A stretch of DNA of 26,533 bases from Andalucia godoyi And28 (GCA_009859145.1 VRVR01000031.1:276983-303515); one strand, 5' to 3'. Positions 1,931 to 26,533 are shown, numbered from the stretch's first letter. The notes: generated by a model not told the origin, from the sequence alone. Translations and numbers: made by a program.

Positions 1931-3169
1931 TTATCGACGACCATCGTCCACCAGTCGATTAATCATCGCTGCGACGAAGCGAGTGGCGTATTCAACGGCG
2001 TTCTGGATGTTCGCATCTCTGTCGTGACCATTGCCGCTGTCGCTGAATCCCTTGACAGCCGGCAATAACATCGTACAATTGGCTTGTGTCTTTCCAATAT
2101 TGTCCTCTGCAACAACTGACCACAGATGCGCAATTTCCATGTCCAAGCATCTCGCTTGGTACTCTGTTAACAAGGCCGCAACCTGCGCCTCATTGTCCGT
2201 CGCGGCATTGCCGACCGTTGACAACACGCGCGTGGCCTGTAGACGATCATGCGCGTCTCCTGCACGTCCAACCAATCGTACTCGCTTAACTTTCTCATAC
2301 TGGCGCCAGGCGTCCGTGGCCGCTGCATGTGCTTGGACGAACAGGACTTCCGACGTATCCTCGACAATCGCCTCTGTAATCAGGTACACTGTCGCGACAA
2401 CACCCGCGTGTCTCGATGGCGTGTCTTCTGCCCGACCAGCACAGCATCCTACCGTCGTTACATGCGTCGGCTTAAATGTGCTGATAAGTTGGCGGTACTT
2501 GTCGACAGCAGGTTGTCCCATCGTGTACGCCGCAGCAAAGACGATTCTCGATCCATTGTGCGAATACTCAATGTATCGCATGGCATCGCCACTGCCAACC
2601 GTTCCTCGGTTCACCTTATTCCATCCAACATTGTCAGCGATAGCAGTTGCATATCTCCATTCATGGTCCTTTGCCACACCGACCAGAATCGTCTTGGTAG
2701 CCGGTGGATTCACACGCTCAAACGTGACCTCGCTGCGAGTAAATACACGGTTCGAGGAAGTGCTGGATGTTGATGATCCTGATGCTCCAGAGGTTCCGTG
2801 TGCTCCCGAAGTTGCAGCAGTGCTTCCGGAGCTTGCCGTATGAACGGGCATGTTCGAGGAGGGAAACAGAATGGCCCAGACATCTGCAAACACTGTCGGA
2901 TTCTTAGACAGAAATTCGTAGAAAAGGACCGCCGCCATTGGACGCATGGGACTGATGACGATCCTTTGCATCCACTGCTTCACAGCAGCGTCTGGATCGG
3001 ACATCTTCAGCACGGCATTCGACTGTCCAGGGTCAATGGTGTGCAAGTAGTGAACAGCTGCTACGAAGACAGCATCATAATGCTGCACAAAATACTTGAG
3101 GAACGCGGAGAGGTGCGCATTAAAGGCAGTTTCCAACTCTTTTTGCGTACAGGCCGAAGAAGAAGACAT
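1931..3169 (-). CDS. Purine nucleoside phosphorylase/MTA-SAH nucleosidase-fold (PNP_UDP_1) protein with an N-terminal helical death-fold-like domain
   Basis: Intact 412-aa ORF. Nucleosidase motifs in order: ILVGVAKDHE, TTVGCCAG, CLDME, VKGFSD. The N-terminal ~100-aa helical domain is joined to it by an S/T/G/A-rich linker (TASSGSTAATSGAHGTSGASGSSTSSTSS). Confidence 0.85.
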   Translation of the reverse strand: MSSSSACTQKELETAFNAHLSAFLKYFVQHYDAVFVAAVHYLHTIDPGQSNAVLKMSDPDAAVKQWMQRIVISPMRPMAAVLFYEFLSKNPTVFADVWAILFPSSNMPVHTASSGSTAATSGAHGTSGASGSSTSSTSSNRVFTRSEVTFERVNPPATKTILVGVAKDHEWRYATAIADNVGWNKVNRGTVGSGDAMRYIEYSHNGSRIVFAAAYTMGQPAVDKYRQLISTFKPTHVTTVGCCAGRAEDTPSRHAGVVATVYLITEAIVEDTSEVLFVQAHAAATDAWRQYEKVKRVRLVGRAGDAHDRLQATRVLSTVGNAATDNEAQVAALLTEYQARCLDMEIAHLWSVVAEDNIGKTQANCTMLLPAVKGFSDSGNGHDRDANIQNAVEYATRFVAAMINRLVDDGRR

Positions 3170-3567
3170 GGCGGGGCGCGATGCATAAAGTCACAAACGG
3201 TCGAGAATACTCGCCAAACAAAAAAACTGCGCAGCAGGAAAGACAAAAAAAGAAAAGAATCGGTGGTCCTCAAACGATTCGGGAACTTCAGTGAGTCGGG
3301 TGACCCATTGCCATTCCCGAATTTTCCGCTGGGCGGGCCGGACTTCGCGACTGGAGTTCGCGACCGGACTTTGGATGATGCCATTGATGGGGGGTCTGCT
3401 ACGACGACAGCTCAGCACCTCACCACCTCAGTCTGTCACAGCAAGCAGCTACATGCGTCATCCCGCCACGGTCCGCACTGAGAACATTTTGCATTTTGCT
3501 CACCTCATTGCTGATGCAATCTTTTCTTCCTGTTTCTTGTTTTTGCATGTAGTTGTGCAGAAAAAGA
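3170..3567. promoter_or_regulatory. Probable shared divergent promoter region between the nucleosidase and Roco genes
   Basis: ~400-nt spacer between head-to-head starts (ATG at 3169 on -, ATG at 3568 on +), containing an A-rich tract at ~3216-3258. Called from position only; no motif identified. Confidence 0.4.
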
Positions 3568-6500
3568 ATGTCGTATTTCCCAAAGTGGGGCACAGGTGCA
3601 GATCTGGTGTTCACTCCATGCGGCCCAGGTACGAACAGGCTGTGCGTGATATCAACTGAAAAGGATATCCTCGGTGACGCATTGGATTTCTTGCGACTGT
3701 GGAAGAACGAGATGCCGCATCGAGTTGTGCTCTTGGATATATATCGTCGTCGGGATCCTGACGTCTCGTTTGAAGAGATGCCATGGTTGGCAGAGACAGT
3801 CGGTGTTCATCTTATTGTGTCATTTTCTCCACTTTCGGCACCAGTTCGTGTCACTTTGGATAGTTCCGGAAATTTCGGAGTAGACAGAAATGGTGTTCCC
3901 CAATGGTTTTTGCGGTATTGCAAAGTGTATTGGATTTTGCGTTTTGCGCCGTCAGAGTGGGATGTCATGCTTTTGAGTCTAGGTTCTGAAGCATTTCTGT
4001 CTGACTTCTTCGCCGCACTGCTGAGCGAATTGGCACGATGCTCGAGACAAGGTCACACAGTATTTGCCATCAATGGGAGTCCTGGTGAGCTTCAAAAAAG
4101 TCAATGCTGTTATCAACTGAAGGTTTACTCTTCCGTAAGCTCTATTCGTTTCGGGTCGACTTCGAGCAACTAACCTCGACAAGGCATTTCTGTCTGGCGA
4201 CTGCGGATGAGACTGATTATTTCCAAAGGCAGCTGCTCCAGTTCGTTGATGGCCGCATCTCATCGGTTTTAAGAGAAGTTGCTCTTGGTCTATCATTAAC
4301 CCAACGTCGCATGCAGTCCATCCGCAGTTATTTATCCGGATCATTTGCGCGCTTTTCGATTGCTCGACAAATGGCGTCTGCCGAAGACGATGAAGCGGCA
4401 AATCGTATAAGAGATGTTGCATTGAGACTTTCTGATCGTTTCCCCCTCTTTGTTTCTCAAATCTCATTGGACCATGTGCTGTCCATGCCTCCTGATCCAT
4501 CGGCATCCTTTGGGCTTCATCTTGTCGTTGAGCAGGCAGTGGGCGAAGAGGATCACAATGTATGTGTGCGCTCGTTTGACTACATTGCTGACGGTTCTGC
4601 AGTTCTGCCGGACATCTCTGTCCCGCACCGCATTTCGTTGATCAACTCACTTTCTGACAATGATGTCCGTGCGCAACTTGCATGCTTGTGGCTCTCCAAG
4701 CTTCCTCCAAAATCGGATCTACCCAAAATTCCATCTAAGACGGCCATTTTTTCTTGGGATTTTGGCACGGTATCTGCAAAGCTGCCCCGTCGTCGAGTTT
4801 TGTTTGTTGGAGAAACACGCGCTGGAAAAACGTCAACCATTCAGCTGCTGCGCGGGGTTGGCAAGCAGCGGTTCTGCCGTACTGAAGAAGCAACAGACGG
4901 CGCAGAACGGCAAAGCACCGAAGTTGGGGGTGTTCACATGATGGAAATTGCAGTTGGTGTGGATGGTCGATCGTGGTCGGATGCTTCATCGGAACGTGGT
5001 GCTGCGGCTGGAGCAGTGTCGCTGCTCCTGCGGTCTGCTGCCAAGGCGCGCAGCTCCACAGTCTCTCCATCTCTCACGGTGCCATCATCATATCCACTCT
5101 CGGCGGTCAGGCCAGGGTCTGAGGACGCCATCATGCCCGATGCTGCGGAAGGCTCGGCTGAAGATTCACAGCTGGACAGAACAATCCGAGAGTTGGCCTC
5201 GCCCCTTGCGTCGAACGGCGGTATCGATGATACGCTTGCCGAGATTCGGAATGCAGCCTCGCACATCCAGGCCAGTTGCGTATCTGTATTTGATTTCGCA
5301 GGTCAAGATCTGTATCGCTGTCTCGATCCCTTGTTTTTCGCGCCGTCCAGCCTGTATGTTCTGGTGTTTGACTTGCTGAACCTGTGCGCCAAGGCGGGTG
5401 GCTCAGCTGGGGTCCTTGCGTCCGAGATCGATCGGTGCATCTTGTCATGGTTGCGGCGGATCTCAGGCATGCTCGCAAATGCGGGTTCACTGACATCGCA
5501 GCGTTCAGTCGTCATTCTTGTTGGCACACGGGGGAGCCAGTTCAAGACTCGTCCTTTTGCCCATCGTGTTGGCAATGCCATCAGGTACAGTATCTTCAAA
5601 TGCAGAGAGTCTTTTGCAAACTTGGAGGTGTATGTGGGAGTGGACAATCCTAGCAGAGCGCGCGGTGATCCAGATGTCCATCCTGATCGCCCGTTCTATG
5701 TCTTAGAGAATGATCCGCATCTCGATGGCGGCAGTGCGTATGACGACGATCGATTGACGTTCATGAAGAGCTTTTCCGCATTCATTTTACGACAATTTGG
5801 TGATCTTGTTTCTGCAAGCCGCCCAGTTCCACTCCGCTACCTTTTTTTGGAAGCGTTTGTGCTTCAGCGGCCGGAATGGAGTGCACGAAGCGTTCTATCC
5901 GAGCGAGAGATTCTATCATACGTTGTACCTGCTCTGAACCTTGGTTCCGAGGCCGACGCCCGCGATGCGCTGAGAGCCCTCATTGAATCAGGGTCGTTTT
6001 TTGGCTTTTGTTCTGGCAATGAGTTGAATCGATCCGAAGGGGTACCGGAAACGGCGGCCGTGATTGTCGTTCGGCCTATTGAATTTGTGAGGCGCTGTGC
6101 AGTATTGATCGGCCATCAGTTTCTGCGTTCGTCTGCCAACGGATTCCGGCAGTCGAATTCATCTCTTTACAATGCACTTTGGCAGCGAATCGGCGCGATA
6201 CGGGAAGACGAGGTGCATCGCATCCTCTGTGTGGATCCCATGTCCAATGGCGGCGGCTTGTGTGATGAAGAGAAGAATTGCTTGTTCTCCACGCTCTGCA
6301 TGATGGGCATCCTCATTCCGATCAGAGTCGTGCAAATGAACGCGACTGATCATCCTTCCTTCTTCTTGTCTACTCCTCGTCTTCACATCCTGAGGAGGAA
6401 CAATGTTGTGAGGGATTATCTTTCCGAAGCAGCTATTGATTCCACTCAGCTCAGATGCCGTTTATTGGCCATTCAAATTCAAACCCGACGTGGGTCAGAA

Positions 6501-7340
6501 GTACCGTCAGTTCCGACTGTCTCTCCTCACGTATTCTATCGACTTTGCAGTTTCTGCATGTTGCTGCTCAGCTGACAACCGAAATCCCCTGCATCGGAGA
6601 TGAAATAGACCCACTGGCGTCGGATTTTCCGATCGCAGAACGAGATATGGAGTTGGTCGACGATTTTGGTCACCATCGTGTTCGCATAGCGATCATGCCT
6701 GGTGGAGAGGCGGCCCGTTTTTCGCAGTCCGCTTGTGGAGTTGTGCGGAAGCTGCCCCGCTGCCCATTATCGATCTTTTCAAAAAGTTCGTGAGCATGGA
6801 CACTGGCATTCCTGCTGGTTCCATGGTCGTGCTTGGTCAGTCGGTGAAATTTGTACCTGAAAATCAACTTGGTTTCGTCGCTCATGGAAATGTCAGAATC
6901 GTTCCCATGGCTCATAAGTCTGTGTTCCTGCAGAGAATGGCGCAGTTTGATGAGTGCAACAAGTTTGAACCGAATGTTGCAGCGAGCTCTCGCTCTGATG
7001 CAGTGCCGAAAGAGTGGACCAGACAGCAATTGACTGATGCAGTGCAAAAGCATCTTGGTCCATTCTTGAAGTACTTTTTCGATCGTTTTGACCCACTGTG
7101 TTCATAGCTGTCGTCCATGCATTGAATTCTTTTGATTCTGGAACCGCCAACAATGTCTTGGCGATAGAGGATCGCAAGAACGCTGTGGAGGTGTGGACAA
7201 ATCGTATTCTGCTGAACGACATGTTTGTGAAGCCGCCGCCTTCAGAGTCTCCGGTTCAGGCATTATGTGCGTTCTTGCGTCGGTATCCGGAAATTTTGCG
7301 CGAAGTGGCAGATCTTCTAGAACTTCCTGCTTTTCAGTAG
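3568..7340 (+). CDS. Roco-family GTPase (unknown N-terminal region, Roc, COR, C-terminal death-fold-like domain), split by four frameshifts; functional gene or pseudogene unresolved
   Basis: Roc motifs: G1 VLFVGETRAGKTS, G3 VFDFAGQDLYRCLDPLFF followed by LYVLVFDL, G4-like VILVGTR. COR-like segments: RPVPLRYLFLE, ARDALRALIESG, VIVVRP, PHVFYRL. ORFs 3553-4173, 4104-6575, 6455-6793, 6733-7107 and 7098-7340 overlap and join into ~1,258 aa if one base is added at each junction. Confidence 0.8.
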
Positions 7341-7761
7341 CAGCGTTCGTAAGCCATCAGGATTGTTGCTCTTTCTTCCCTTCTCTGGTTTCTTCCAGTG
7401 AATAGGTATTCAACGAGGCAGAGGTTTCTGCGCAGACTTCATGTTTCTGGATGGGCTCGAACGCTGCGGATGTGGCGGAACAGCACCCAACCAGATACTT
7501 CTCGACCTCCAGTCAGAGTCATGAATAACGAGAGAAACGAATCCGGACTGCACAAGCTGTGGTGCTGCTCTCTTCCATTTCCTCACTTCGCAGAATTCGT
7601 GGATCTTCCTCCCCAAATCCATCGACAAATATTCATAATTCGCACAGACTCAGACGGTCATGAGAGTGATTTTCGTCGCCCAGTATGGCAACGTCTCCTA
7701 CCACTCTCTGCAAAACCGGGGTCTGCATGGACAAAACAAAGCAGAGGTCATGAAATAATCG

Positions 7762-8135
7762 TGTGCTGCCTGGCAGTACGTTCAGGGAAATTCGTGCTCT
7801 TCTTGTCCTGCGGGGTCTTATGGGTCCGCTTCAACAATGACTGCAGCTTATGCACCCCTGGATCGTACTCCTCGACGATCGATGCAACCGCAAGCAACAC
7901 GTGTACTCCGTGCTAGGCTGGAATGTTTTCTACAATTGCGGGAGCAAATGCATCCGGATTCTGCCTTCCGTGTCCTTCTGGAACGTTCTTCTCTGTTTCC
8001 GGCATAAACACATCCTCCGCGTGGCTGCCATGTCCGCTTGTATCGTACTCTCCCCATATCGGAGCAAACGGCTCCCAGTTGTGCGTCCCGTGTCCAACAG
8101 GAACATTTTCCACGGTTGCTGGCGCAGCAAATGTG
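7762..8135 (+). pseudogene. Degenerate fragment of a Cys-rich CxxG(S/T)(Y/F)S repeat protein (GCC2_GCC3/ephrin-receptor-like type)
   Basis: Reads CAAWQYVQGNSCSSCPAGSYGS, then after a frameshift near 7840 CSLCTPGSYSS...TCTPC*AGMFS...CLPCPSGTFFS...WLPCPLVSYS...CVPCPTGTFS. In-frame TAG at 7914-7916; no start, signal peptide or TM visible. Confidence 0.7.
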
Positions 8136-9023
8136 TTGGTACAAGGTCAAAAACGCATCATTGTTATCTCTCACTCCTGTTGGCACACCATCTACGCGCT
8201 CTCTGTTTTCTGGTCCATACTCCCAAGGGATATGGAGCCAAACATTGAAAAACAAGAACTGGGCGAGCTCTAAGGCGAGCGACAGTACTTTCAGCCGGAA
8301 TTCCCACCCTGCAAGATCGATGTTCACGGAAACGGCGTATCCGAGTGCGAGGGCAATGACGAATGCAATCGACAGTGACGTTCGGACTGCGGATTCCCGG
8401 TCGAATTCAAACACAGTCAGGTAGTCGCTGAACGCTCTGGTCGACACAATGACCATCCACATTGTCCACCAGACTTCAAAATCAACCCCAACTTTAAACA
8501 GGTGTTCGAAGCGCTCAAGAACCTTGCAGTCGAGTGCATGATGAACGACGAATGCGTACCACAATCTCAGCCAGTCCGCGTACACCTCGAATGGCGTCGG
8601 ATAGAACCAAAACACCACATACAAGGCTATGCAGAGACCCAAAAACCGAAGCACGTCTCGAAGACGAAGACCTCGGCCAGGTTGCTGCCGTGGTAATCTC
8701 CCCATCTTGGCCGAGCAAGCTCGTTCGTCGTTTCGTGGTGCAAATGGAAATGAATGCAGAAGACAGCAGCAAGAAGAGCGAGGAAACTGAAGGCCTTCGT
8801 CGCAGAATGTGGGACGGTCGATAGTGTAACGCCTGTTCCCAGGAAGTTCGCAGTTTGCTTGCATTGCTGTCACCCACGACGTTCCAGATTCGTCGCCTGA
8901 GCGAACCCTCCGTCGGGCCGTTTGCTTCGATGCAGGAGCTCGCACGACAAGCGGATCACAGACCTCCGGAAATGCCAGTGTGTGCACATTCTGCAAGTGG
9001 AGTGTGCGTTGACTGAAGTCCAC
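7848..9023 (-). CDS. Hypothetical multi-pass membrane protein; boundaries uncertain
   Basis: The central part has about four hydrophobic segments (VLRFLGLCIALYVVFWFY; VWWTMWMVIVST; SLSIAFVIALALGYAVSV; LSLALELAQFLFFNVWL). The ORF-track start is not ATG (first ATG at 8864). Below ~8135 the ORF is just the antisense of the Cys repeat. Confidence 0.4.
   Translation of the reverse strand: MDFSQRTLHLQNVHTLAFPEVCDPLVVRAPASKQTARRRVRSGDESGTSWVTAMQANCELPGNRRYTIDRPTFCDEGLQFPRSSCCCLLHSFPFAPRNDERACSAKMGRLPRQQPGRGLRLRDVLRFLGLCIALYVVFWFYPTPFEVYADWLRLWYAFVVHHALDCKVLERFEHLFKVGVDFEVWWTMWMVIVSTRAFSDYLTVFEFDRESAVRTSLSIAFVIALALGYAVSVNIDLAGWEFRLKVLSLALELAQFLFFNVWLHIPWEYGPENRERVDGVPTGVRDNNDAFLTLYQHICCASNRGKCSCWTRDAQLGAVCSDMGRVRYKRTWQPRGGCVYAGNREERSRRTRKAESGCICSRNCRKHSSLARSTRVACGCIDRRGVRSRGA
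7851..8135 (+). repeat. Degenerate 60-nt (20-codon) tandem coding repeat, ~4.7 units
   Basis: Units begin at 7851, 7911, 7971, 8031 and 8091. Each starts with a Cys codon; complete units 1, 2 and 4 have Cys at codon 18 (Trp in unit 3) and all four end in Pro. Confidence 0.75.
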
Positions 9024-9116: not shown

Positions 9117-10520
9117 ATGACGACCGAGAAACAACAGGCCTCGATCATTTCGTGTTTTGGCAGTCGATCTTCCAGCATAGAGACCACGGCTGGCACTCTG
9201 GAGCACACATGGGACAATGTGTTTTCCAACCTGCCCTGGTCGCTCCGTTCCTACTTGAGGATCGCCATCTTGTGGTGGTATCGTCCGTTCAAGAAGGGCG
9301 CTGGTAACAGAGTGGATTCGTCGATGTGGGGGTCTCTTGGCAGGTTTCTGTTTCTTGTATTCTGGACTGGAGTTGTGTGGTTGATGCAGGTCTACATTGT
9401 ACCTGTTTATGGTTGTAACATGGAAGGAGCAACAAGCGGATATTTATGGTTCAATTTGGGCGTGTTGTTTGGCGGTGTGTGTGTTTGTTTAGCCACATTT
9501 TCCGTTTTTTTCCCGGTTTGGATGTTTTGTTTTCGGATTCCCAAAGAGTTCACGGATGATGATACTCTGATCAAAAAGTATGGTGCTCGTCTGACCGGCA
9601 TTCCATTATTTTGGCGCGTGGAGATGGCGGCGATGATGACTCGCAATTCCACTTTTGATTCTAAAAGGAAACTTCGCGCTTGTAGTGCGTCGGGGATCAC
9701 CCGAATATGCCTGCATATCATTCTCCTTGGGCATTTTGGTATTATCATGGGCGGCATGGTGGTCGGAGCCATTGTGTACGACGGAGATCACAAGGACTGT
9801 GTTATCTCTTCCCGTGTAACGCTTTATTTTCTCATGTACTGGCTAGTTGGCCTACCCTGGGTGATGGTAGCAGTGTGTTTCATCTGGTCCATTTTCTCTT
9901 TGTGCATGTTTATCATCGATTTTGGAACTCGCCTCACAGACGCATTACGCTCTTTTGATGCTACAGCCATTTCCGTTCATGAACGCAGTGCTTTCTCGCA
10001 GTTGAACTCTGAATGGCATGTTTTGTTGAAAACTGCGTCGGATTTGTCTTTAATCTGGTCTCCTTTGACGTGCATTACGTTCTTGGCAGGTTCAGCAATT
10101 TTGTTGTTTAATGTGATTATTGCTTTGGAAAACAAACCGAACAATCTTCTTGACTTGTGGCTGAGTGCCATAATTGCCGTTGGCATGATTCTGGCACTTT
10201 TCCTCTTGGCCTTGCCCCATTCCACAGCGGAAAGAGCAAGAGAGGCTGCAATATCCAATACCCATTTCAAATTGCTTTCAAAGGATGTTGAGAGATACCC
10301 TTCAAAATCTTCCAGCCCGATTCATCCGGGGCCAGACTTCAAATCGAATGTCTGCAGCGTTGACGAATCTGTTGAAGAAGTCAAACGACTTCTGAAAGAC
10401 AATCCTTTGTACATGTCACTTGCTGGGCATTCCATTACATTGAAACGCGTTGGGACCATTTTTGTGGGCTTATTGACTCTCTTTGTATCCTTCTTGGCTC
10501 TTCAAGGACTACGGCTATAA
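9117..10520 (+). CDS. Gustatory-receptor-like 7TM protein (probable 7TM ion channel/GRL superfamily), paralogue A
   Basis: Intact 467-aa ORF with no signal peptide, a short pre-TM1 helix and seven hydrophobic segments. A long helix follows TM4, and the split terminal TM7 ends MSLAGHSITLKRVGTIFVGLLTLFVSFLALQG, resembling the GR/OR TM7 layout with a terminal Gln. Confidence 0.7.
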   Translation: MTTEKQQASIISCFGSRSSSIETTAGTLEHTWDNVFSNLPWSLRSYLRIAILWWYRPFKKGAGNRVDSSMWGSLGRFLFLVFWTGVVWLMQVYIVPVYGCNMEGATSGYLWFNLGVLFGGVCVCLATFSVFFPVWMFCFRIPKEFTDDDTLIKKYGARLTGIPLFWRVEMAAMMTRNSTFDSKRKLRACSASGITRICLHIILLGHFGIIMGGMVVGAIVYDGDHKDCVISSRVTLYFLMYWLVGLPWVMVAVCFIWSIFSLCMFIIDFGTRLTDALRSFDATAISVHERSAFSQLNSEWHVLLKTASDLSLIWSPLTCITFLAGSAILLFNVIIALENKPNNLLDLWLSAIIAVGMILALFLLALPHSTAERAREAAISNTHFKLLSKDVERYPSKSSSPIHPGPDFKSNVCSVDESVEEVKRLLKDNPLYMSLAGHSITLKRVGTIFVGLLTLFVSFLALQGLRL

Positions 10521-10976: not shown

Positions 10977-12398
10977 TCAAACTTTCACTCCCTGAAGTGC
11001 CAATATGGAAATCAGCAGTGTTAACGTTCCGATAAGGATAGATGCCACCTTTCTCAACGTCATGGAATAGCCTGCAAGTGACAGACTGATGGGATGATTT
11101 TGTGCGAACGATCTGATTTCCTCCAGCCAGAGATCCTGACGCTTCTTCAAAGACTTGTCATGCTTTTTGTGTCTCAACTTTTTTTCATCTTGAACGATGA
11201 ACTTGAGGTCATTGGCGTTGACGACATTCTCGAACACTCTCGTTGCAACGGCGTGCGGCATCGCTAATACGAAGAGAGCGCCTATCATCCCTCCAGCAAT
11301 GAGAAAACTCAGTCCCAGATTGATGAAGATATCGGCATTGCTCTTGAGAGTGGAAATCAAATTGAAGAGTAAGATCACGAAAACCGCAAGGAACGTCAGA
11401 CATGTCAACGGAGACCAAGTTCTTGACAAACGAGCTGCCGTGTTAGACATGATGTGCCATTCGATCTTTAGTTCCGACGGGAATTCGAAGTTGTTTTCGA
11501 AACACTTCAAGGACCCGCGAAGACGCCTCCCGAAATGAATTATTAGAAGGCACAAACTGAGAACAGACCAGAAGAAAGACAAAGCTGTCATGACCCACGG
11601 AAGACTAACAAACCAGTACATGGCAAAATGCGCTGTCATGCCGACCGCAATCAGACAGTCATTGCCTTGCCCTTGATACCCAAATGCACCAATCGCGGCA
11701 CCGAGTATGCAACATCCAATGTGTCCCAAGAAAAAAATCCATGACAACGTTGCGATAATGCAATGTCGGCTGACTTTTTCAAACACCTTGTGACCTTTAG
11801 TTGACGACATCAGCGTGTGATCATTTTCGTTCCCTGCTACCTCAAGTGACCAAAACAATGGGCAAGCTTAAAACGGATATTCTGTGGTCAGCAGCCTTTC
11901 ACTGAGAACACGATCTGGTATTTGTCCCCAGAGCCTCCAAACAGGAAGAAAGATCGAAATCACACCTAAACACAAGCAGCCGCCAAAATACCAAAACAAA
12001 AGATTGAACAGTAGATAGCTATCATCCAACCTTTCAGCACTGCAAAAGTATTTTGGTGCGACAACGGCGTACACTATCCAAACGATTCCGGTTGCAATCC
12101 AATAAATCACAAACTGCAAGAATGCACAATACCATCGCCCATGGATCCGTGGACATTTCTCGACATTTTCAATATAGAACGACGACAAACTCCACCGGAA
12201 CGACGATATATTCCACCCAAACATCGTGATACGAAGGAAAAGTCTCAATATCCATGGTGTTTCCTTGAATGCACCATCCCACAGTCGTTGGAGATTCGAG
12301 ACATTAGTCGGGATTCTGTGGAGATCGGATGGCACTGGAGATCCGGGACTGGAAATTTCAAATGTGAACTCAGCAAAACATCCATTCATCATGACCAC
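10977..12398 (-). CDS. Gustatory-receptor-like 7TM protein, paralogue B, interrupted by an in-frame TAA at 11868-11870
   Basis: ORFs 11868-12398 and 10977-11858 are in the same frame (EYPF*ACPLFW) and give 473 codons collinear with paralogue A. Shared blocks include PWxLRxxLRI, YLxFNL, PLFW, MYWxVxLPWVM, WSPLTCxTFLA and SLAGxSxTL...LALQG. Confidence 0.75.
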
Positions 12399-13363: not shown

Positions 13364-15577
13364 CTACTCACTTTTCAAGGATAGTTCCCATCCATCGGGA
13401 ACTGGAGTGAGAGAAACAAAGCGCTCGTTAGCAGGGTCCATAAGAGAATCGAAAATAGCCGGCATAAGCAGCGGGAACCTGGGCAGTAGACGTTGACCGA
13501 GATCATGAGCAATCGTTTCCGGAGAAAACCCTGGCAACTGGTTCATCGACTCCGACATGTGCACAACCATGTTTCGGATTTGTCGAAGCAATATGGAAAC
13601 TGTTGTTCGAGTGGAAGGTTGGAACCTCGGATTCTTCTTCCAAACCGACGTCAAAATTGACTTTGTAGTGTCATCAAACTCGCTCAACCAGTCTCCAGCA
13701 CAATGATGTAGCACGGATGGAGTCCGTTTTTCAACATGTTCTACAATGCGCAGCGCACTCGGTACGTTATCATTGTAACAATCAACCAACACTCGAATGT
13801 TACTGACCATGCGCTTCCAACTCCACGTCGCAGGATGTTTACAAGCCTCGAAGCTGCGAATGCGCAACGTTGGCTCAATTCGCAGAAGGCGGCGTAACAA
13901 GTCAAACATCACTGAAGCCTGTAAGCGAATGTCAATGTGGCGGGTCAGCAGACCAACGACTTTTTCATCGCCACGTGAATGGCCATCTCCACTCAGCGAA
14001 CTTGTATTCGCAACGTCGAGAACGTCTTGGTGTCGGTCGAATAAATGAGTGCCGCCCATCAACACAAAATACAAAACGCACCCAACGGACCACATATCCG
14101 CAGATACTTCGTATTTTCCCTTCAAATCAATCTCGGGAGCACGGTACAAATCTGTTCCAATAACTGTTTGCATTTCACCACGAGTCCCGGGGCAGTCAAT
14201 GATCTTGGAAAAGCCAAAATCACACAGTTTAAGGAGAGGCCGATCATCATCCGCTCGCTGAAAAGACACCAAAATATTGTCAGGTTTGATGTCTCTGTGA
14301 GAGATGTGTGCCCGGTGACAAGCATCGACTGCAGCCAGGATTTGTGAGGTGATCGAACGAACATGAGCGTCATCGAGCAGACGAACCGATGGAGAAGGCA
14401 AGGAGGGTGAATTGTCGGGACGAGGAACATCGGGTGAGCTGTTTGCAAGTCCGCCAAACTGATCCATCGTTGACCGAGAGTGGGTATCGACTACATATTG
14501 ACTGAGAGGCTGCTTGCAAAGTTCCATCAAAAGGCAAAAATATGTGTTCGGTCCGATTCGCAGCTTTGTGGGAGAGCTCTCAATCCGTACCACATGTGGA
14601 GTTTCTTCACAAAGCTTGCGAATTGACATAATCTCTCGCTGCAATTTTTGAAGATCCTTCGCAACTTGTTCTCGTTTTGCTGTGAAAGATTGTTCCCACA
14701 TTTTAATCGCCATGGGACGCGGAGAAGAAAACAATGGTGACGTGAGACTGCAACGCCAAACTTTCGACAGATTTGTGTGGGCAATGCAATTTGCACGAGT
14801 GAACGTAATATTCAACTGCAATTCAAAGACGTCATTCTCTCCACGGGACATGGAGTACACAAAAGGCTGTGCATCGTGATCATCGACGTCCTCATCGCTG
14901 CGCTTGGCATTCATGTCCCCATCTCTTGGCGGTGGCATAATGTTGGAGGATGAATTCATTTCTGAAGCGGCAACATTGTTCGTAGAGTTGGTCATAGACA
15001 ATGGTGAAGAAATTGATCCAGTTGAACCAGTAGCGCATAAAGGCGGACGTATCGTCGGAGAAGCACTAACTTGTCGAGCAGGGGACATCTGCGAAGAAGT
15101 TGGGGCTCGAAAGATTGCAACGAATCTTTCAGATCTGATTGCTTCCAGTATATGTTCCAAACGAAAACCGTTGTTTTCCATCAATTCGAACTGTTGTTTC
15201 AGTAATGCATGTTCTCCGCATTGCAGTAGCATTGTTCCATCAGTGCGCTTGCTATGCATACCGTGGTCGAGGCTGCCGCAAACCATGCACATGTGTTCAT
15301 ACGTACATTCGACGTCTCCGCATCCGAAGCCCTTCTAATGATTGAAACGCAGACACAAGGGTCTTGTTCCAGTATCTTGGTAAACACAACACAACGGAAT
15401 AACCCATACTGGCATGTCAATTCGAGTACCCTTCCATGAATTCTGCAGTTTGCGGATTTCCCGCGAGGACACACTCCGGCAGCGGCTAGCAAAGACAAGA
15501 AGATTAGGGAATCTTCCTGACTGCAACTCGGTTAACACTCTCTCCACTTGTGAGGCAGTAGACGACGCTGCAGACAT
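13364..15577 (-). CDS. Zinc finger (CCCH + CCHC-like), Ser/Thr kinase and KEN ribonuclease (IRE1/RNase L-like) protein, with an in-frame TAG at 15335-15337
   Basis: Kinase motifs: MAIK, LQREI, HRDIKPDN, DFG, GTDLYRAPE, DMWSVG. KEN signature: WSWKRMVS...DWLSEFD...LLRQIRNMVVH. ORF 15335-15577 is in frame with 13364-15292, giving LCLRFNH*KGFGCGDVECTYEHMCMVCGSLDH across the stop. Confidence 0.85.
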
Positions 15578-16056: not shown

Positions 16057-19000
16057 ATGTCGGATCCAGCGATGCTGAGCCCGGCTTCGGCTGCGTCAGA
16101 TACCTTTTCGCGGCTGCTGTCCCTGTCCAAACTGCTCCCGCAGATTTTGGCTTGTACGCGTCACGATGAAGTCGTCACGAATTCACTTCGCCGCGATGTC
16201 CTCATCCCCCTCGACAATCTTCTCAATGGACAGAGTGCCGGTGTTGCGTTTTTCGGCATCACGAATGCGGGAAAGAGCTTCCTGCTCAACGCGCTGTTTG
16301 GTGAACCGAAACTCTTGCCAATCTCAGACGACCGGTCGGCAACCACGCACGTACCCGTCGCACTGTTTCGGCAGGAAATCCTTGATTCGCAGGGGAAAGT
16401 TTCGGAAAAGTACTTTCTCGAACTCGATTTCTTCTCGGTCGATCAAGTCATGAAGGATTTGCTTTTGGCCGCTCGTGTCGTTCTCACCAAGGAGCTGAAC
16501 GAGTATGTTAAGAAACAGATTCGTGGTTCTGCATATTCTGAAACGTCGGCTTGGAAGAGCTGGGGAGAATCCGACTTTCAGGACGCAGATGGAAAGCCGA
16601 TCCTGAACTTCCATGTCGATGCCGATTATCTTCGGGGTCTGCTGCGCCGTCTTCTGGGCAATTCCTGGCAGGATGTCGTATTTGGATCGCTGTGCGACGA
16701 CGACTGCGAAGTACCTACTTTTCCGCAGTTGCAGCGGCAAGTCGACGTCTTCCAGCATCAACGAGCTTACAAGTACCGCGATGGGCTGGCCATTGAATCC
16801 GTAACTGCTGTCCTTGCAGAGCTTGTGCGCGGTGAGAACAGCGAGTATTCCAGAAACGTGCCTATCGAAGCGTTGTTCCTGCAAAAGATTACGGTGCGCG
16901 GGAGATTTGACAGAGCACTCGTTCCTCATGGAATGTGCCTGATTGACATGCCTGGTACCGGAGACAAGCACTTTCTGGGCCACTATGCGATTGCGAATGT
17001 TCTTCGTACGGTTCATCGTGCGGCGTTTGTCATGAAGTATTCGCAGTCTTCGGACGATGTTCACATTTCATCGCTCGTGGAGTTCCTTCGACGGCCAGAT
17101 CGTTCCGATTTACTTGCGAATTTAGTTGTCGTCAAAGTGCTGGAGCGTTCAGAAGTACCTGACAATGACATTGACCCGGTGGAACAGAATTTCAGAGCCG
17201 AGTTTTGCCGCAGACTCGGAGTTCAGCTTGATGAAAGCTTGTTTTGCACTGTGAATGCGCTATTTCACCTTGTAGACAAAGAGCTGGTGTCCGAAGGAGG
17301 GGCTATCACAAAGTCTGTTCTCGCTCGAGTTCGTCGACTTCTTGAGGAGAACGACGACCATATCCGTGGTGTCGCTGGTATGGTGCCTCTGATGAGTGCG
17401 CTAAACTCTTCGTTCAATCCGAGGTTAAGGGAGATTCTTGAGTACTGCGAGCGAGCTGTCACCAAGTTGCAGTCGTTGATGCGGGTGTTCAAGAAGCTGG
17501 ATTCCAAGAAAGATGTCAAATTTCGTGCTTCTTTGATGGAATTGCAAAACAGTGCAAGAGCACGTTTATGCGCCAAGTTGGAAAACCTGTTTGTTAGTCA
17601 TTGTGAACACATTTTCTCCACAATATTGAAATACGATCCTTCGTCGGAGACTTCCATTCAAAAAACTTGGACGGCCATCTTTGCAATGCCCGGATTTATG
17701 GAAATGCTGTTTCGAGGAACTTCCGATCAACTCTCATCTTTGGTCGAGAATGTTGTCTTGAATTATAAGGAATTTTCTCGAGAGGGTTTTACATCCCTTC
17801 AAACATGGTTATCTTCCCAGTTTCGGGAACGAGTAGTTTTCTCTCCAAATTTCGATGATGAGATTACAAGTGACGCATATCTCGGGATGTCTTTGCATGT
17901 AGCGCAGGTTATCGACGATGTCATTGTCACCGCTCGCCAATCCGTTCAACAGAGATTCAAGTCTGATCCTCAGGCTGATCGTCCTGAAACCCGTCTGATT
18001 AGGGTTCAGAGATTTATGGATGCGTTGTTCAGACCCCCATCCATTCCTTTTTCGCGAATTCTTCAAGATCAAATTGAGGACCCGTTTACAGATCCGTCCT
18101 TCAGGGTGTTGTTTTCTCTGGAATCTGTTGTTCCGGATCTCAACAATTTAGCAGAAGTTCTTTCGAAGTTATTGGATTTTAAAGAGCCGCTGGTGGAATG
18201 GGAGGCGTCTTTGAAGCGAGCAATGCAACGTATCAAACCTGGTTGTCTAGTTTTGGACTCGGATTGGGAAAAGTGTCACCGATTTGGTCGTTCGATATTG
18301 GCATTCCGCGGTCCGAGTCACAAGAAGGTTTATTCTTCGTACGTTTTATTGCGGCATTTGCTGAAACTGGACTTGGGATTCGAACAATACCGTTCCTATT
18401 TTTTGCCAGCCGAGGAACTGCGCAGAATCCCGTCCATATCCGCAACTGATGAAGATTACATACTACGCGAGCGTATGTTGGGGCTCGAAAAAGAGAATTC
18501 CGGCGTCGTCCCATCGGATCGTTTGTTGGTTGCTCATGACGGTTCATCTCTTACAGTTCGGCCTTCGTCATTAATCACAAACGTATCCTATCTTGAGGAT
18601 TTTTTGATTGAGCATGGCCATTATTTCAAAGTCGGTAATGCGGACATTCTTGTTCGTTCCTTTGATTTCAACAAAGACGGAACTCTGTGTCTCCAGTGTC
18701 TGACTCCGTTCATTGCGAAAGAGTCTGGCGTAGCGCTGTTGAATTCAATGTGCGTCAGTTTTAAGGAGCTGTATGGAATTGAACTGATGAGTTACTCGAA
18801 GACGGGGAGATTCGGCATCAATATTCCCGTGGTTTCGGCAAAGTTTGTCCCACAGGCTGTTCATAGCGCAGACAATTCGAGAGAGATTGGAGGATCCATC
18901 GTCAATCATTTTCCGCATTGTGTCCGAATCGATGCTAATTCAGGGGCCGATATTGCGTCGGTGGGGGGTTTTGTGTCGTTGGGTGAAGAGCAGAACGATA

Positions 19001-19947
19001 TCTACGCAGTCACTGCTGGACATGTTCTTCTCCCTTTGGATCGAATATTGGGGCTATCGTCTGCCGTTTCTCGTGTGTTTTCGGTGATGAGAAATGTGAA
19101 TTCATCTACGCCAACACGAGAAGCCAAAGCCGAGTCTTCAAAAGTGCTTATTGCGCAGTGTTGCATCTCTCTTTCCGACGCATTTCATTTCTGCCTGACC
19201 GATCAAAAGGTTCATCTGTATGGCGTGGAACACACTGTCGAAGTGCAAGCATCGTCGGTGAAATCTCATAAGTTGATCCACGACTTTGCATTCATCCCTA
19301 TCCCGATGGAGTATCACGATTTCATCCAGCCGTTTGTGTTCCAAATTCGTGACGTTGAATCCCAAGAAACGGTTTCTGAACCTTATTGGCCATCTGAAAC
19401 TGCTGCAGAGTTGCTGCAACGGGGCTTGCGGTACTTGCAAGAGGATCGCGGATGCAAAGTAGTTTGCTGCAAAAAAGGAATTACGACAGGGACGACTCTT
19501 GCCGTTCTGCAAGTCATCAGCGCAGATGATATCGATCATCCACCGGGCCTGGAATTGTATCCTTTTGTTTCGCCTCCTTGCAAGGCTTGTCGCAAACGTG
19601 AGGATAAGACCAAGGGATATATACCCGCTCCGGGCGACTCGGGTGCGGTGTGGGTTATCGACCGCGTGTTGGATGCGAATTTTCGAAAGAACACCGAGTA
19701 CACGGATTTGCTGCGAGGCGTGATTGTGGGTCTTCATTCGCTTGGTATGGAGGATAAGTTCGTCCAATCTGCCCAAGACGTGCTGGCCTATGCATATCCC
19801 GTGTGGACCATGATCGGAGAAGTCCTTCGCATGCAGAAGCTTTTTGGTGGCCTTACTCAGCCTCGAGAGCTGTGGCCAAAGGGAAACACGGATCCAAACC
19901 TACTGTCGCCACGATCGGCAACAGAAGCTGCCGACGATCCATTCTAA
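16057..19947 (+). CDS. Dynamin-like GTPase fused to a C-terminal trypsin-like (PA clan) serine protease
   Basis: Intact 1296-aa ORF. GTPase motifs: G1 FFGITNAGKSFLLNAL, G2 SATT, G3 LIDMPGTGD, followed by a long helical stalk-like region. Catalytic triad context: VTAGH (His 19021), HDFAFI (Asp 19282), PGDSGA (Ser 19639), then VIVGLH. Confidence 0.85.
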   Translation: MSDPAMLSPASAASDTFSRLLSLSKLLPQILACTRHDEVVTNSLRRDVLIPLDNLLNGQSAGVAFFGITNAGKSFLLNALFGEPKLLPISDDRSATTHVPVALFRQEILDSQGKVSEKYFLELDFFSVDQVMKDLLLAARVVLTKELNEYVKKQIRGSAYSETSAWKSWGESDFQDADGKPILNFHVDADYLRGLLRRLLGNSWQDVVFGSLCDDDCEVPTFPQLQRQVDVFQHQRAYKYRDGLAIESVTAVLAELVRGENSEYSRNVPIEALFLQKITVRGRFDRALVPHGMCLIDMPGTGDKHFLGHYAIANVLRTVHRAAFVMKYSQSSDDVHISSLVEFLRRPDRSDLLANLVVVKVLERSEVPDNDIDPVEQNFRAEFCRRLGVQLDESLFCTVNALFHLVDKELVSEGGAITKSVLARVRRLLEENDDHIRGVAGMVPLMSALNSSFNPRLREILEYCERAVTKLQSLMRVFKKLDSKKDVKFRASLMELQNSARARLCAKLENLFVSHCEHIFSTILKYDPSSETSIQKTWTAIFAMPGFMEMLFRGTSDQLSSLVENVVLNYKEFSREGFTSLQTWLSSQFRERVVFSPNFDDEITSDAYLGMSLHVAQVIDDVIVTARQSVQQRFKSDPQADRPETRLIRVQRFMDALFRPPSIPFSRILQDQIEDPFTDPSFRVLFSLESVVPDLNNLAEVLSKLLDFKEPLVEWEASLKRAMQRIKPGCLVLDSDWEKCHRFGRSILAFRGPSHKKVYSSYVLLRHLLKLDLGFEQYRSYFLPAEELRRIPSISATDEDYILRERMLGLEKENSGVVPSDRLLVAHDGSSLTVRPSSLITNVSYLEDFLIEHGHYFKVGNADILVRSFDFNKDGTLCLQCLTPFIAKESGVALLNSMCVSFKELYGIELMSYSKTGRFGINIPVVSAKFVPQAVHSADNSREIGGSIVNHFPHCVRIDANSGADIASVGGFVSLGEEQNDIYAVTAGHVLLPLDRILGLSSAVSRVFSVMRNVNSSTPTREAKAESSKVLIAQCCISLSDAFHFCLTDQKVHLYGVEHTVEVQASSVKSHKLIHDFAFIPIPMEYHDFIQPFVFQIRDVESQETVSEPYWPSETAAELLQRGLRYLQEDRGCKVVCCKKGITTGTTLAVLQVISADDIDHPPGLELYPFVSPPCKACRKREDKTKGYIPAPGDSGAVWVIDRVLDANFRKNTEYTDLLRGVIVGLHSLGMEDKFVQSAQDVLAYAYPVWTMIGEVLRMQKLFGGLTQPRELWPKGNTDPNLLSPRSATEAADDPF

Positions 19948-20003: not shown

Positions 20004-21420
20004 TTAAATCCCAAAGCGCGAGGCCGAGGCAGTCTCGAGCATTTCGATGAGTGCGCTGTTGGAAATGAGACTGTTATGATCGTCTTGACTCCCATTCGCT
20101 TTTCGGGAAAACAGGATGGTTGCGTACTCGGCGGATACGGACACGTAGAACAAATACTCGACGGGGACGATTCCGTCGTCATCGGTGGCGAGCAGACAAC
20201 GAGGTTGCGGCAACGTCGGAGAAGCGTGAAACAGCGGTTTGCGCAGCTCCGGGTCCGATTGTACCAGAAACAGGTTGCTGGAAGCACAAAGTTCGAGCGG
20301 GACTTTGTGTTTCGTCATCTTGCGCAGTGCCTTCGTGATGATGGTCGAGTGGCGACGCAGCGATTCATCTTCATCTGGGATGTTCAAAAAGTGGCGAAAT
20401 GCAACACCGTGGCTGATTCGGAGAGGCGGCGGTTTGGATTCAGGCAGAGACTTTTCGGACTCACTGTCTTTCACGGCTTTGAGGATGTTCAGAATGACGT
20501 TGGCAGAGATGGTCATATGGGCAAGCAACTGCGGCGTCACAAAATCCTCGTCACACTCGCCGCAGTGAAATCGGAAGCCAAAGTGTCCTTGTCGAAGCGC
20601 GCGTTCGTTGAGCAGAAACGTGACGAAGTCTGGAAGATCGAATGGGCAAAACGGATGCTGCCACTCGTCGCCGACATAGTCCAACCCCACACAGAAGTTG
20701 TGCAGCAGCTTCTCGCGCAAGTCAAGGTCTTCCACGTCGGTGTTCCGAGAAAGATTAAAAGCACGGCGGATGCCCTCCAACATTACAACGGGTTCGGATT
20801 GAAACATTGCTTGATGATTCGCGTTCTGAGGCGACAACCTGTCTTTGACGGTCGTTACCCAGTCACCAATATCTTCCGATGTTTGATTTCCCGCTGGATA
20901 CGTTGGAATTCCAAGGTCGTTCATGACTTGCGGAGTCAATCGTTTTGCATCCTTGAATTTTCGTTGCAATGCTGCCAGATAGCGCAGTCGAACACGACTA
21001 TCTGGAGGACGAAAGGTAAGATGCTTCATCAACCAGGGGCGCGTCACCAGGTCTTTGGCGCCAACAGACAACTCGGCGTATCCCACTCCGGATGTTTGGT
21101 ACCGATCGCATATCCAGGTAATCAGTTCGCGCAAGATCTTTGGATGCTGGGAGTACATGTCGTCTTTCAGACAGAACCGCCGCGGAAAGAACTCGGGCGT
21201 AAATTTACCTTTGAAGAGCTCTCTTTCGGAACGCGCAGCACTTTTTGTTTTGCATTTGCATAGTAATCGAGGAGATTGTCACCACTGGCAATAGATCCAA
21301 AGTCGATGCTCGTGCAGTTCAATTGTGGACCCTTCAAGCAGGGCGTGGTTGCTCGATCGATGAAATCGCAGGCGAACCGATGACACCTTCCTCATCATCA
21401 TCATCGTTGTTATGTTGTTG
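20004..21420 (-). CDS. Adenosine/AMP deaminase-like (amidohydrolase) protein; 5' part frameshifted and start not identifiable
   Basis: Deaminase motifs in ORF 20004-21158: GVGYAELS, FRFHCGE, LRISHG, LELCASSN, LATDDDG. The frame is open upstream to 21278, and protein-like text continues in two other frames to ~21420. The N-terminal HxH metal ligands are not seen. Confidence 0.75.
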
Positions 21421-26337: not shown

Positions 26338-26340
26338 TCA

Positions 26341-26533
26341 GGGTTAGGGTTTAGGGTTAGGGTTTAGGGTTAGGGTTTAGGGTTTAGGGTTTAGGGTTAG
26401 GGTTAGGGTTAGGGTTAGGGTTAGGGTTAGGGTTAGGGTTAGGGTTAGGGTTAGGGTTAGGGTTAGGGTTAGGGTTAGGGTTAGGGTTAGGGTTAGGGTT
26501 AGGGTTAGGGTTAGGGTTAGGGTTAGGGTTGGG
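26341..26533 (+). repeat. Telomeric repeat array (TTAGGG)n with proximal TTTAGGG variants
   Basis: G-rich strand runs 5'->3' toward the window end, the orientation of a true chromosome end. Five TTTAGGG units lie among the first eight full units (26344-26396), then 22 perfect TTAGGG units (26397-26528) and a final TTGGG. Confidence 0.97.

Follow-up and report, generated by a model that had tools for sequence, protein, structure and literature searches.

A nucleosidase gene and a GTPase gene with a common terminal domain

The DNA stretch analysed here, hereafter the window, comprises 26,533 nucleotides of nuclear DNA of the jakobid (Discoba) Andalucia godoyi And28 (GCA_009859145.1, VRVR01000031.1, positions 276983–303515), and all coordinates below are counted from its first base. 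About 31 tandem copies of (TTAGGG)n occupy positions 26340–26533, up to the last base; the window is therefore a subtelomere, the last 26 kb of an A. godoyi chromosome. Close to its other end, two divergent genes, one for a nucleosidase of the predicted 5'-methylthioadenosine/S-adenosylhomocysteine nucleosidase/purine nucleoside phosphorylase (MTAN/PNP) fold and the other for a Roc-type GTPase, carry homologous copies of a small domain of approximately 100 residues that is all-helical by prediction. This shared domain is located at the N-terminus of the nucleosidase and at the C-terminus of the GTPase. The features of the pair are as follows.

1931–3169, minus strand: nucleosidase gene, an intact open reading frame (ORF) of 412 residues comprising the shared domain, a linker and an MTAN/PNP-fold domain
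1931–2752, minus strand: catalytic domain (residues 140–412 plus stop), predicted from the AF2 model, Foldseek and hhalign
2660–2677, 2435–2449, 2135–2149 and 2039–2053, minus strand: catalytic-domain motifs VAKDHE, GCCAG, CLDME and KGFSD, respectively
2753–2860, minus strand: low-complexity linker rich in Ser, Thr, Gly and Ala (residues 104–139), from sequence
2861–3169, minus strand: copy 1 of the shared, CARD-like domain (residues 1–103), from BLASTP and hidden Markov model (HMM) matches to GTPase C-termini
3170–3567: spacer of 398 nucleotides between the divergent start codons
3338–3371: 13-nucleotide unit CCGGACTTCGCGA repeated 2.6 times in tandem within the spacer
3568–7340, plus strand: type-A Roc GTPase gene in five frame segments, collinear with ANDGO_00624 and ANDGO_07277 (1260 residues each)
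4092–4104, plus strand: frameshift 1 (frame 1 to 3), adjoining an A6 run
4788–5540, plus strand: Roc-type GTPase domain, from the match to PF08477 and a profile search of PDB
4809–4835, 5292–5309 and 5520–5540, plus strand: Roc motifs, namely the P-loop GETRAGKTS, DFAGQD and GTRG
5541–7008, plus strand: post-Roc region (about 450–490 residues), conserved between type-A and Kelch-type GTPases and located where a COR domain would be expected
6551–6554, plus strand: frameshift 2 (frame 3 to 2), at TTTC
6709–6721, plus strand: frameshift 3 (frame 2 to 1), at GGCGGCCCG
7009–7337, plus strand: copy 2 of the shared, CARD-like domain (7009–7092 in frame 1, 7095–7337 in frame 3)
7090–7098, plus strand: frameshift 4 (frame 1 to 3), at GACCCACT, within the shared domain

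Homology and predicted fold of the shared domain

Comparison of the nucleosidase N-terminus with the C-terminus of the GTPase, bridged across frameshift 4, by BLASTP gave 36 identities in 103 positions (60.5 bits, E = 3.6e-18), whereas shuffled sequences (n = 300) scored 8.7 bits on average and never more than 24.6 bits. Matches of the nucleosidase N-terminus to the two intact GTPase paralogues were of the same order (E = 5e-19 and 5e-18), and an HMM recognized the two pieces of copy 2 with E-values of 5.9e-18 and 4.9e-43, respectively; the HMM found no further copies in the window. The homology had been proposed in an initial annotation of this DNA, the essentials of which hold: the two termini align, the count of 29 identities in 69 positions is exact, the final helix pairs of both copies align as well, and the spacer between the divergent genes has the length of approximately 400 nucleotides given there. 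The peptide quoted for the GTPase, however, is absent from any single reading frame and silently bridges frameshift 4.

The AlphaFold (AF2) model of nucleosidase residues 1–109 (predicted local distance difference test score, pLDDT, 81.6; predicted template modelling score, pTM, 0.73) consists of seven helices, the first two of which are contiguous, consistent with the split helix 1 of CARDs. When the model was compared with PDB using Foldseek, CARDs accounted for 10 of the 12 best matches (NLRC4, NLRP1, ASC, ARC, Apaf-1, RIP2), with TMq of 0.44–0.59, TMt of up to 0.67 and, for the best of them (NLRC4, ARC and Apaf-1), root mean square deviations (rmsd) of 2.7–3.3 Å; the individual values were TM 0.57/0.67 and rmsd 2.7 Å for 6mks and TM 0.59/0.67 for 2p1h. 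A fold search against viral structures was uninformative, and searching PDB sequences with the profile of the shared domain produced no match to the death superfamily or to effector-associated domains (EADs). The comparison with death folds that had been suggested in the initial annotation thus places CARDs on top, although with E-values above 1 that are not significant and with blank sequence profiles. Consequently, the description of the domain as death-fold-like can be kept for the predicted fold, which is closest to that of CARDs, but not for a link at the level of sequence profiles. No wording stronger than 'CARD-like by predicted fold' is warranted, and the assignment to the death fold is one that we infer from the model.

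The nucleosidase

The nucleosidase of the window is 86% identical to A. godoyi ANDGO_07231. Sequence searches with it were blank: there was no match to Pfam, PF01048 included, at E-values of up to 10, single sequences and profiles retrieved only chance matches from PDB sequences, and none of the PADLOC models matched this enzyme (type 1 in the classification used below). Therefore, a fold search was needed for its identification. The AlphaFold model of residues 140–412 (pTM 0.70, mean pLDDT 60) gave 346 Foldseek matches in PDB at E ≤ 0.001, and all of the top 50 were MTA/SAH nucleosidases or futalosine hydrolase (best E = 1.9e-10, probability 1.0, TM 0.50–0.69). Alignment to E. coli Mtn with hhalign, which was weak overall (probability 5%), set D343-M344-E345 opposite E172-M173-E174 and S376-D377 opposite S196-D197. 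E170, within the VAKDHE motif, can be set against Glu12 of the E. coli MTAN by motif order only; judged in the same way, VAKDHE corresponds to the Glu12 strand and GCCAG to the GSAGG loop. The catalytic motif residues are invariant across the family. Taken together, the match to the MTAN fold and the invariant motifs indicate that the protein is an N-glycosidase of the MTAN/PNP fold and probably active, in agreement with the comparison with PNP-fold domains made in the initial annotation.

The linker between the two domains of the nucleosidase aligns poorly and differs in length among paralogues. In two distant homologues outside Andalucia the shared domain is replaced by a SAP domain, and the N-terminal module of the nucleosidase is therefore exchangeable.

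The GTPase and its frameshifts

The GTPase encoded next to the nucleosidase matches the Roc model PF08477 with 32.1 bits (cutoff 27), and its paralogues do so with 30–39 bits. When the profile of the family was searched against PDB, the Roc domain of LRRK2 (E = 1.4e-6) came ahead of Rab (approximately 1e-3). The G1 (GETRAGKTS) and G3 (DFAGQ) motifs are present and separated by a low-complexity insert of approximately 150 residues, while G4 (GTRG or GTHG) is without the usual Asp. In the post-Roc region a COR domain was detected neither by Pfam (E up to 10) nor by the PDB profile search, in which there was no match to LRRK2 beyond Roc. Of the designation 'Roco GTPase' used in the initial annotation, the Roc part is therefore justified by the sequence matches, whereas 'Roco' is not established, because no COR was detected.

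The GTPase gene is 77–79% identical to ANDGO_00624 and ANDGO_07277; these, like the other close relatives of the window's proteins, all of which come from A. godoyi, are paralogues, not orthologues. The segments retrieved by tblastn lie in frame 1 (3568–4092), frame 3 (4050–6554), frame 2 (6551–6721), frame 1 (6709–7098) and frame 3 (7065–7334), giving a frame order of 1/3/2/1/3 with four frameshifts of one nucleotide each in the assembled sequence. The segments are free of in-frame stops and have a conceptual length of 1259 residues. At the end of the gene, frame 1 reads ...FDRFDPLCS and then reaches a stop codon at 7105–7107, the remainder (TVFIAVVH...) being in frame 3 from position 7095. 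The A. godoyi proteome in EukProt includes a 103-residue entry (MDTGIPAG...FDRFDPLCS; 6799–7107, plus strand), which corresponds to the frame-1 fragment between frameshifts 3 and 4. Introns were considered as the source of the frame changes and rejected, because the segments abut or overlap without gaps in protein coordinates and the introns of A. godoyi are 55–756 nucleotides long (PMC7050145), the shifts here being of single bases.

It is quite probable that the frameshifts are real and that the gene is a recent pseudogene. Decay is suggested by the integrity of the long ORFs nearby (1296, 984 and 642 residues, across approximately 14 kb of coding sequence), by an in-frame TAA in one of the membrane-protein genes and a beheaded helicase-like ORF elsewhere in the window, and by the Illumina correction of the 454-based assembly (PMC7050145). 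An assembly error or a very recent inactivation would, on the other hand, agree with the fact that in this 454-based assembly all four shifts are 1-nucleotide deletions beside short homopolymers. Two features of the broken copy agree with the same alternative: it is free of in-frame stops, and with 91 private substitutions, as against 102 and 154, it has fewer than either of the other type-A paralogues. Both argue that it was constrained until recently.

Distribution of the shared domain

We carried out a profile search over 1.84 billion representative proteins, all of which were read. Six proteins carrying the shared domain were recovered, every one of them from A. godoyi; with the window copies and a second search the family amounts to nine domain copies in eight loci or proteins. 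The domain is thus confined, among the proteins searched, to Roc GTPases, nucleosidases and an adaptor-like protein of this organism:

two type-1 nucleosidases (shared domain, linker and MTAN/PNP-fold domain)
three Roc GTPases of type A, including the broken one
ANDGO_07311: six Kelch repeats followed by Roc, the conserved post-Roc region and the shared domain
ANDGO_01445: a single chain with a Kelch remnant, Roc, the conserved post-Roc region, the shared domain and, beyond a linker, a type-2 PNP domain
ANDGO_07253: 240 residues with two shared domains in tandem, of which one is clear and the other diverged (domain E = 0.017)

The type-2 PNP domain is also present in ANDGO_01237, behind a different N-terminal region, in which no similarity to the second domain of ANDGO_07253 was found. 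ANDGO_01237 approaches PF01048 (23.1 bits, cutoff 25.1; E = 5.5e-5), and the type-2 paralogues match the PADLOC models for PDC-M60C (E = 1.9e-12) and for the PN-superfamily effector of CBASS (E = 9e-4 to 4e-3). PNP types 1 and 2 are connected by hhalign (E = 4.8e-5, probability 68%). A 168-residue fragment of a type-2 PNP domain constitutes ANDGO_00552, and ANDGO_01445 begins inside a Kelch repeat; several family members seem to be truncated or decayed, as in birth-and-death evolution.

Two subtypes of the domain can be distinguished. The nucleosidase copy is 49–52% identical to the copies in ANDGO_07311 and ANDGO_01445 and to domain 1 of ANDGO_07253, with all of which it has the terminal ILFP motif in common, but only 32–39% identical to the copies of the type-A GTPases, including that of its neighbour. 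Because of this gap, the neighbour may not be the partner of the nucleosidase, or not the sole one. In ANDGO_07253, domain 1 groups with the nucleosidase subtype and domain 2, weakly, with the type-A subtype, which is how a bridge between the two genes of the window would be expected to look.

In the proteome file the nucleosidase ANDGO_07231 (entry 4784) is directly followed by the GTPase ANDGO_07277 (entry 4785), and ANDGO_07253 and ANDGO_07311 come shortly afterwards, as entries 4796 and 4798. If the order of the file is that of the genome, this suggests a second nucleosidase–GTPase pair within a cluster.

A candidate homotypic adaptor between sensor and effector

The shared domain is a terminal, linker-attached, non-enzymatic domain that is found on NTPase switches as well as on effectors, recurs in an adjacent gene, occurs in a sensor–effector fusion and makes up a protein consisting of tandem copies only. 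This pattern is the published signature of EADs and death-like adaptors, and for that reason recruitment or clustering driven by a sensor is the explanation that we favour: the domain most likely works like an EAD, as an adaptor that makes homotypic contacts. With somewhat better than even confidence, we regard the window as one unit of a lineage-specific sensor–adaptor–effector family in which the domain couples a Roc GTPase to a nucleosidase homotypically. According to this model, a trigger would be sensed by the N-terminal region of the GTPase or, in the Kelch-type proteins, by the propeller, and the activated GTPase would cluster or recruit the nucleosidase through domain–domain contacts, either directly or via the two-domain ANDGO_07253. 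PNP-fold enzymes act as oligomers, so that clustering would be expected to activate the nucleosidase; the enzyme would then split the N-glycosidic bond of an adenine nucleotide or nucleoside, in the manner of the immune effectors that are ATP nucleosidases. Homotypic binding, the adenine nucleotide or nucleoside substrate, the trigger and the role in immunity or cell death are all inferred.

Several observations weigh against this interpretation. The window GTPase carries four frameshifts, and this particular pair is therefore probably not working. The nucleosidase copy of the domain has closer relatives than the one in the neighbour, which departs from the rule reported for bacterial EAD pairs. 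With Foldseek the shared domain reaches no E-value below 1.7 and a probability of at most 0.77, which is not significant; and none of the nine domain copies has a match to death, CARD, PYD, DED, bDLD or EAD models in Pfam-A at E-values of up to 10. The nucleosidase model has a mean pLDDT of 60, confidence being low across the middle third, and the type-1 nucleosidase is without any Pfam or PADLOC match of its own. Close divergent neighbours are common in this compact genome (PMC7050145), and segmental duplication of the subtelomere would hold the pair together without selection. Furthermore, Roc GTPases are known to dimerize and are not known to assemble into inflammasome-like wheels. The sensor–effector pair postulated in the initial annotation is plausible for the family, in which the same domain joins Roc GTPases and nucleosidase domains elsewhere, once in a fusion, rather than for the window, where the GTPase is frameshifted four times. 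Since the window GTPase is broken, the working pair is more likely to be the paralogous ANDGO_07231/ANDGO_07277, and the intact nucleosidase of the window may have its partners among the remaining proteins with the shared domain.

A bolder version of the model can be put forward only tentatively and is, in our opinion, doubtful: A. godoyi, which is free-living and far removed from animals, would possess a self-contained death-fold network with two kinds of Roc-GTPase sensors, ANDGO_07253 as an ASC-like bridge and two kinds of PNP effectors, all built on a single CARD-like family.

Among the alternatives, the one that survives best, although we consider it unlikely, is that the adaptor is real but works with partners other than the neighbour, the nucleosidase being recruited by the Kelch-Roc GTPases or by ANDGO_07253 and the adjacency reflecting a compact genome, in which divergent close pairs are the norm, and the duplication of a subtelomeric block. 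The closer relationship of the nucleosidase domain to those proteins, including the common ILFP motif, points in this direction, as does the fusion ANDGO_01445, where the same subtype adjoins a PNP domain, and so does the fact that the nucleosidase is still intact despite its broken neighbour. However, the nucleosidase/type-A pair has apparently been kept at a second locus (the consecutive proteome entries above), partners within the death fold are not necessarily each other's closest sequence relatives, and recruitment by the Kelch-Roc GTPases or ANDGO_07253 is compatible with the neighbour being an additional partner.

It is improbable, in turn, that the shared domain is a regulatory, ligand-binding or localization module through which its carriers respond to a common signal or reach a common site with no mutual contact. 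Small helical bundles have many roles, the domain has no sequence link to known adaptor families and its fold match is statistically weak, all of which would suit such a module; yet the best fold matches are consistently CARDs, and the distribution of the domain (NTPase switches and effectors, an invariably terminal and linker-attached position, a tandem-only protein) matches the published behaviour of EADs and death folds. Finally, it is very improbable that the two genes have no functional link, the nucleosidase being a housekeeping enzyme of MTA/SAH salvage whose extension is peculiar to the lineage, and the GTPase gene a dead relic: housekeeping MTANs are indeed its best structural matches, and the neighbouring GTPase is frameshifted within a decaying subtelomere, but the nucleosidase has diverged beyond the reach of Pfam PNP_UDP_1 and of PDB sequence searches, it has been duplicated and has its N-terminal domain in common only with signalling GTPases, a GTPase of this kind is fused to a related PNP domain, which matches PNP models of defence systems, and the broken GTPase, with its few private changes and no in-frame stops, was constrained until recently.

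Comparison with known systems

The favoured explanation, namely homotypic coupling of a Roc GTPase to a nucleosidase, has its closest conceptual precedent in the bacterial EAD systems, in which homotypic adaptor domains are combined with GTPase-centred cores and with effectors that include PNP enzymes (Kaur, Burroughs, Iyer and Aravind 2020, 2021; PMC7159879, PMC8195603). The cores of these systems comprise GAP1 GTPases and AP-GTPase/COR proteins, and enzymes of the PNP superfamily are among the associated domains. As in EAD systems, a small non-enzymatic helical domain is located on a core NTPase and again on the effector encoded by the adjacent gene, with extra copies elsewhere in the genome. 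Unlike them, the A. godoyi family belongs to a eukaryote, forms no operon and matches no EAD or death-like model of Pfam; moreover, the copies in its adjacent genes, in contrast to those of bacterial EAD pairs, are not mutual closest relatives.

With respect to the GTPase, the nearest parallel is DAPK1, in which Roc and COR are combined with a C-terminal death domain and which has been described as exclusive to metazoa (PMC6337361). Both proteins contain a Roc GTPase, a long conserved region and a C-terminal domain that is, or by prediction resembles, a death fold. However, DAPK1 has a kinase, ankyrin modules and a recognized COR, whereas the A. godoyi GTPase has no kinase and its COR is not detectable. 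It also differs from DAPK1 in its N-terminal region, which is of unassigned type or Kelch, in the resemblance of its terminal domain to CARD rather than to the death domain, and in having a nucleosidase as putative partner.

As for the nucleosidase, its attachment to a putative immune-type adaptor is reminiscent of CBASS Cap17, Detocs DtcC, the N-terminal PNP domains of fungal and coral NLRs, and the sponge protein DDAN, in which a death domain is combined with a PNP domain and ATP nucleosidase activity has been demonstrated (bioRxiv 10.1101/2023.01.24.525353). DDAN and the window nucleosidase follow the same adaptor–linker–PNP layout, and Roc, COR and LRR are named among the domains of the PNP-containing proteins depicted in the figure to which the legend of Fig. 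4 in that preprint (10.1101/2023.01.24.525353) refers. In contrast to the immune PNPs, the type-1 enzyme is without a match to PF01048 or to the PADLOC PNP effectors, only its type-2 paralogues having such matches, and here sensor and effector are encoded by separate genes with a common adaptor.

We found no previous description of the Andalucia system in the literature. The initial annotation had raised the possibility that such a pairing was new. Precedents exist, however, in DAPK1, DDAN, the PNP proteins with Roc, COR or LRR and the EAD principle of bacteria, so that both the elements and their logic are already known. What is new is the jakobid host, a domain family without detectable relatives, the split of sensor and effector around a Roc GTPase and the adaptor-like tandem protein.

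A similar genetic arrangement is found in the fungal NWD2/HET-S pairs of NLR and effector, in which sensor and effector genes are adjacent and divergent and have a short homologous terminal module in common, by means of which the sensor switches on the effector. NWD2/HET-S relies on an amyloid motif and a STAND NTPase, whereas in A. godoyi the corresponding elements are a (predicted) folded helical domain and a Roc GTPase.

Death-fold adaptors are regarded as a hallmark of cell-death and immune signalling in animals, with distant counterparts in bacteria. Should the favoured explanation be true, the logic of a sensor NTPase, a homotypic adaptor and a nucleotide-degrading effector would operate in deep-branching unicellular eukaryotes, nucleotide-depletion immunity would reach protists, and a natural system would be at hand in which a Roc GTPase, not a STAND ATPase, drives the recruitment of effectors. 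If the more tentative proposal of a self-contained network were also to hold, inflammasome-like logic would be implemented on a Roc GTPase, and A. godoyi would provide the first death-fold adaptor system among eukaryotes other than metazoans. The nine copies of the domain constitute a small, experimentally tractable set for mapping adaptor specificity.

Other genes of the window

The part of the window between the GTPase gene and the telomere contains the following genes.

7923–8270, plus strand: cysteine-rich ORF (region 7398–8424, plus strand) with a match to Ephrin_rec_like (PF07699, E = 7e-7), overlapping a 391-residue ORF on the opposite strand (7848–9023, minus strand)
9117–10520, plus strand, and 10977–12398, minus strand: paralogous multi-pass membrane proteins (35% identity)
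13364–15292, minus strand: protein kinase of 642 residues (PF00069, E = 1.4e-36)
16057–19947, plus strand: protein of 1296 residues with an N-terminal P-loop region resembling dynamin/MMR_HSR1 GTPases (weak Pfam and PADLOC Leo matches)
21451–24405, minus strand: protein of 984 residues with three AAA+ modules (PF00004 three times, AAA_lid_6)
24454–26295, minus strand: helicase-like ORF whose match to PF13087 (AAA_12) is confined to the C-terminal half (profile positions 95–194)

The AAA+ protein, the kinase–RNase-like gene, the GTPase and the helicase remnant together make the window look like a cluster of immune-type genes. The kinase has a weak C-terminal match to RNase 2-5A/KEN (PF06479, E = 0.0013, below threshold) and thus a layout like that of IRE1 and RNase L. 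The helicase-like ORF starts in the middle of a domain, 45 nucleotides off the telomere repeats, and its 5' part seems to have been removed by the chromosome end; its downstream part encodes a Cys/His-rich stretch and a coiled coil.

The 1296-residue protein has a GDSG motif close to its C-terminus, and a paralogue that is more than 90% identical to it (1291 residues) is encoded elsewhere in A. godoyi, suggesting a block duplication. A trypsin-like C-terminus of this protein and an adenosine-deaminase-like gene at 20004–21158, both guessed from motifs, were dropped, as neither was supported by Pfam.

When the other window genes were compared for common terminal domains, only the two membrane-protein paralogues proved to be related. 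The minus-strand copy is interrupted by an in-frame TAA at 11868–11870; its alignment to the intact sister is ungapped across this codon, which therefore represents a nonsense mutation and not an intron.

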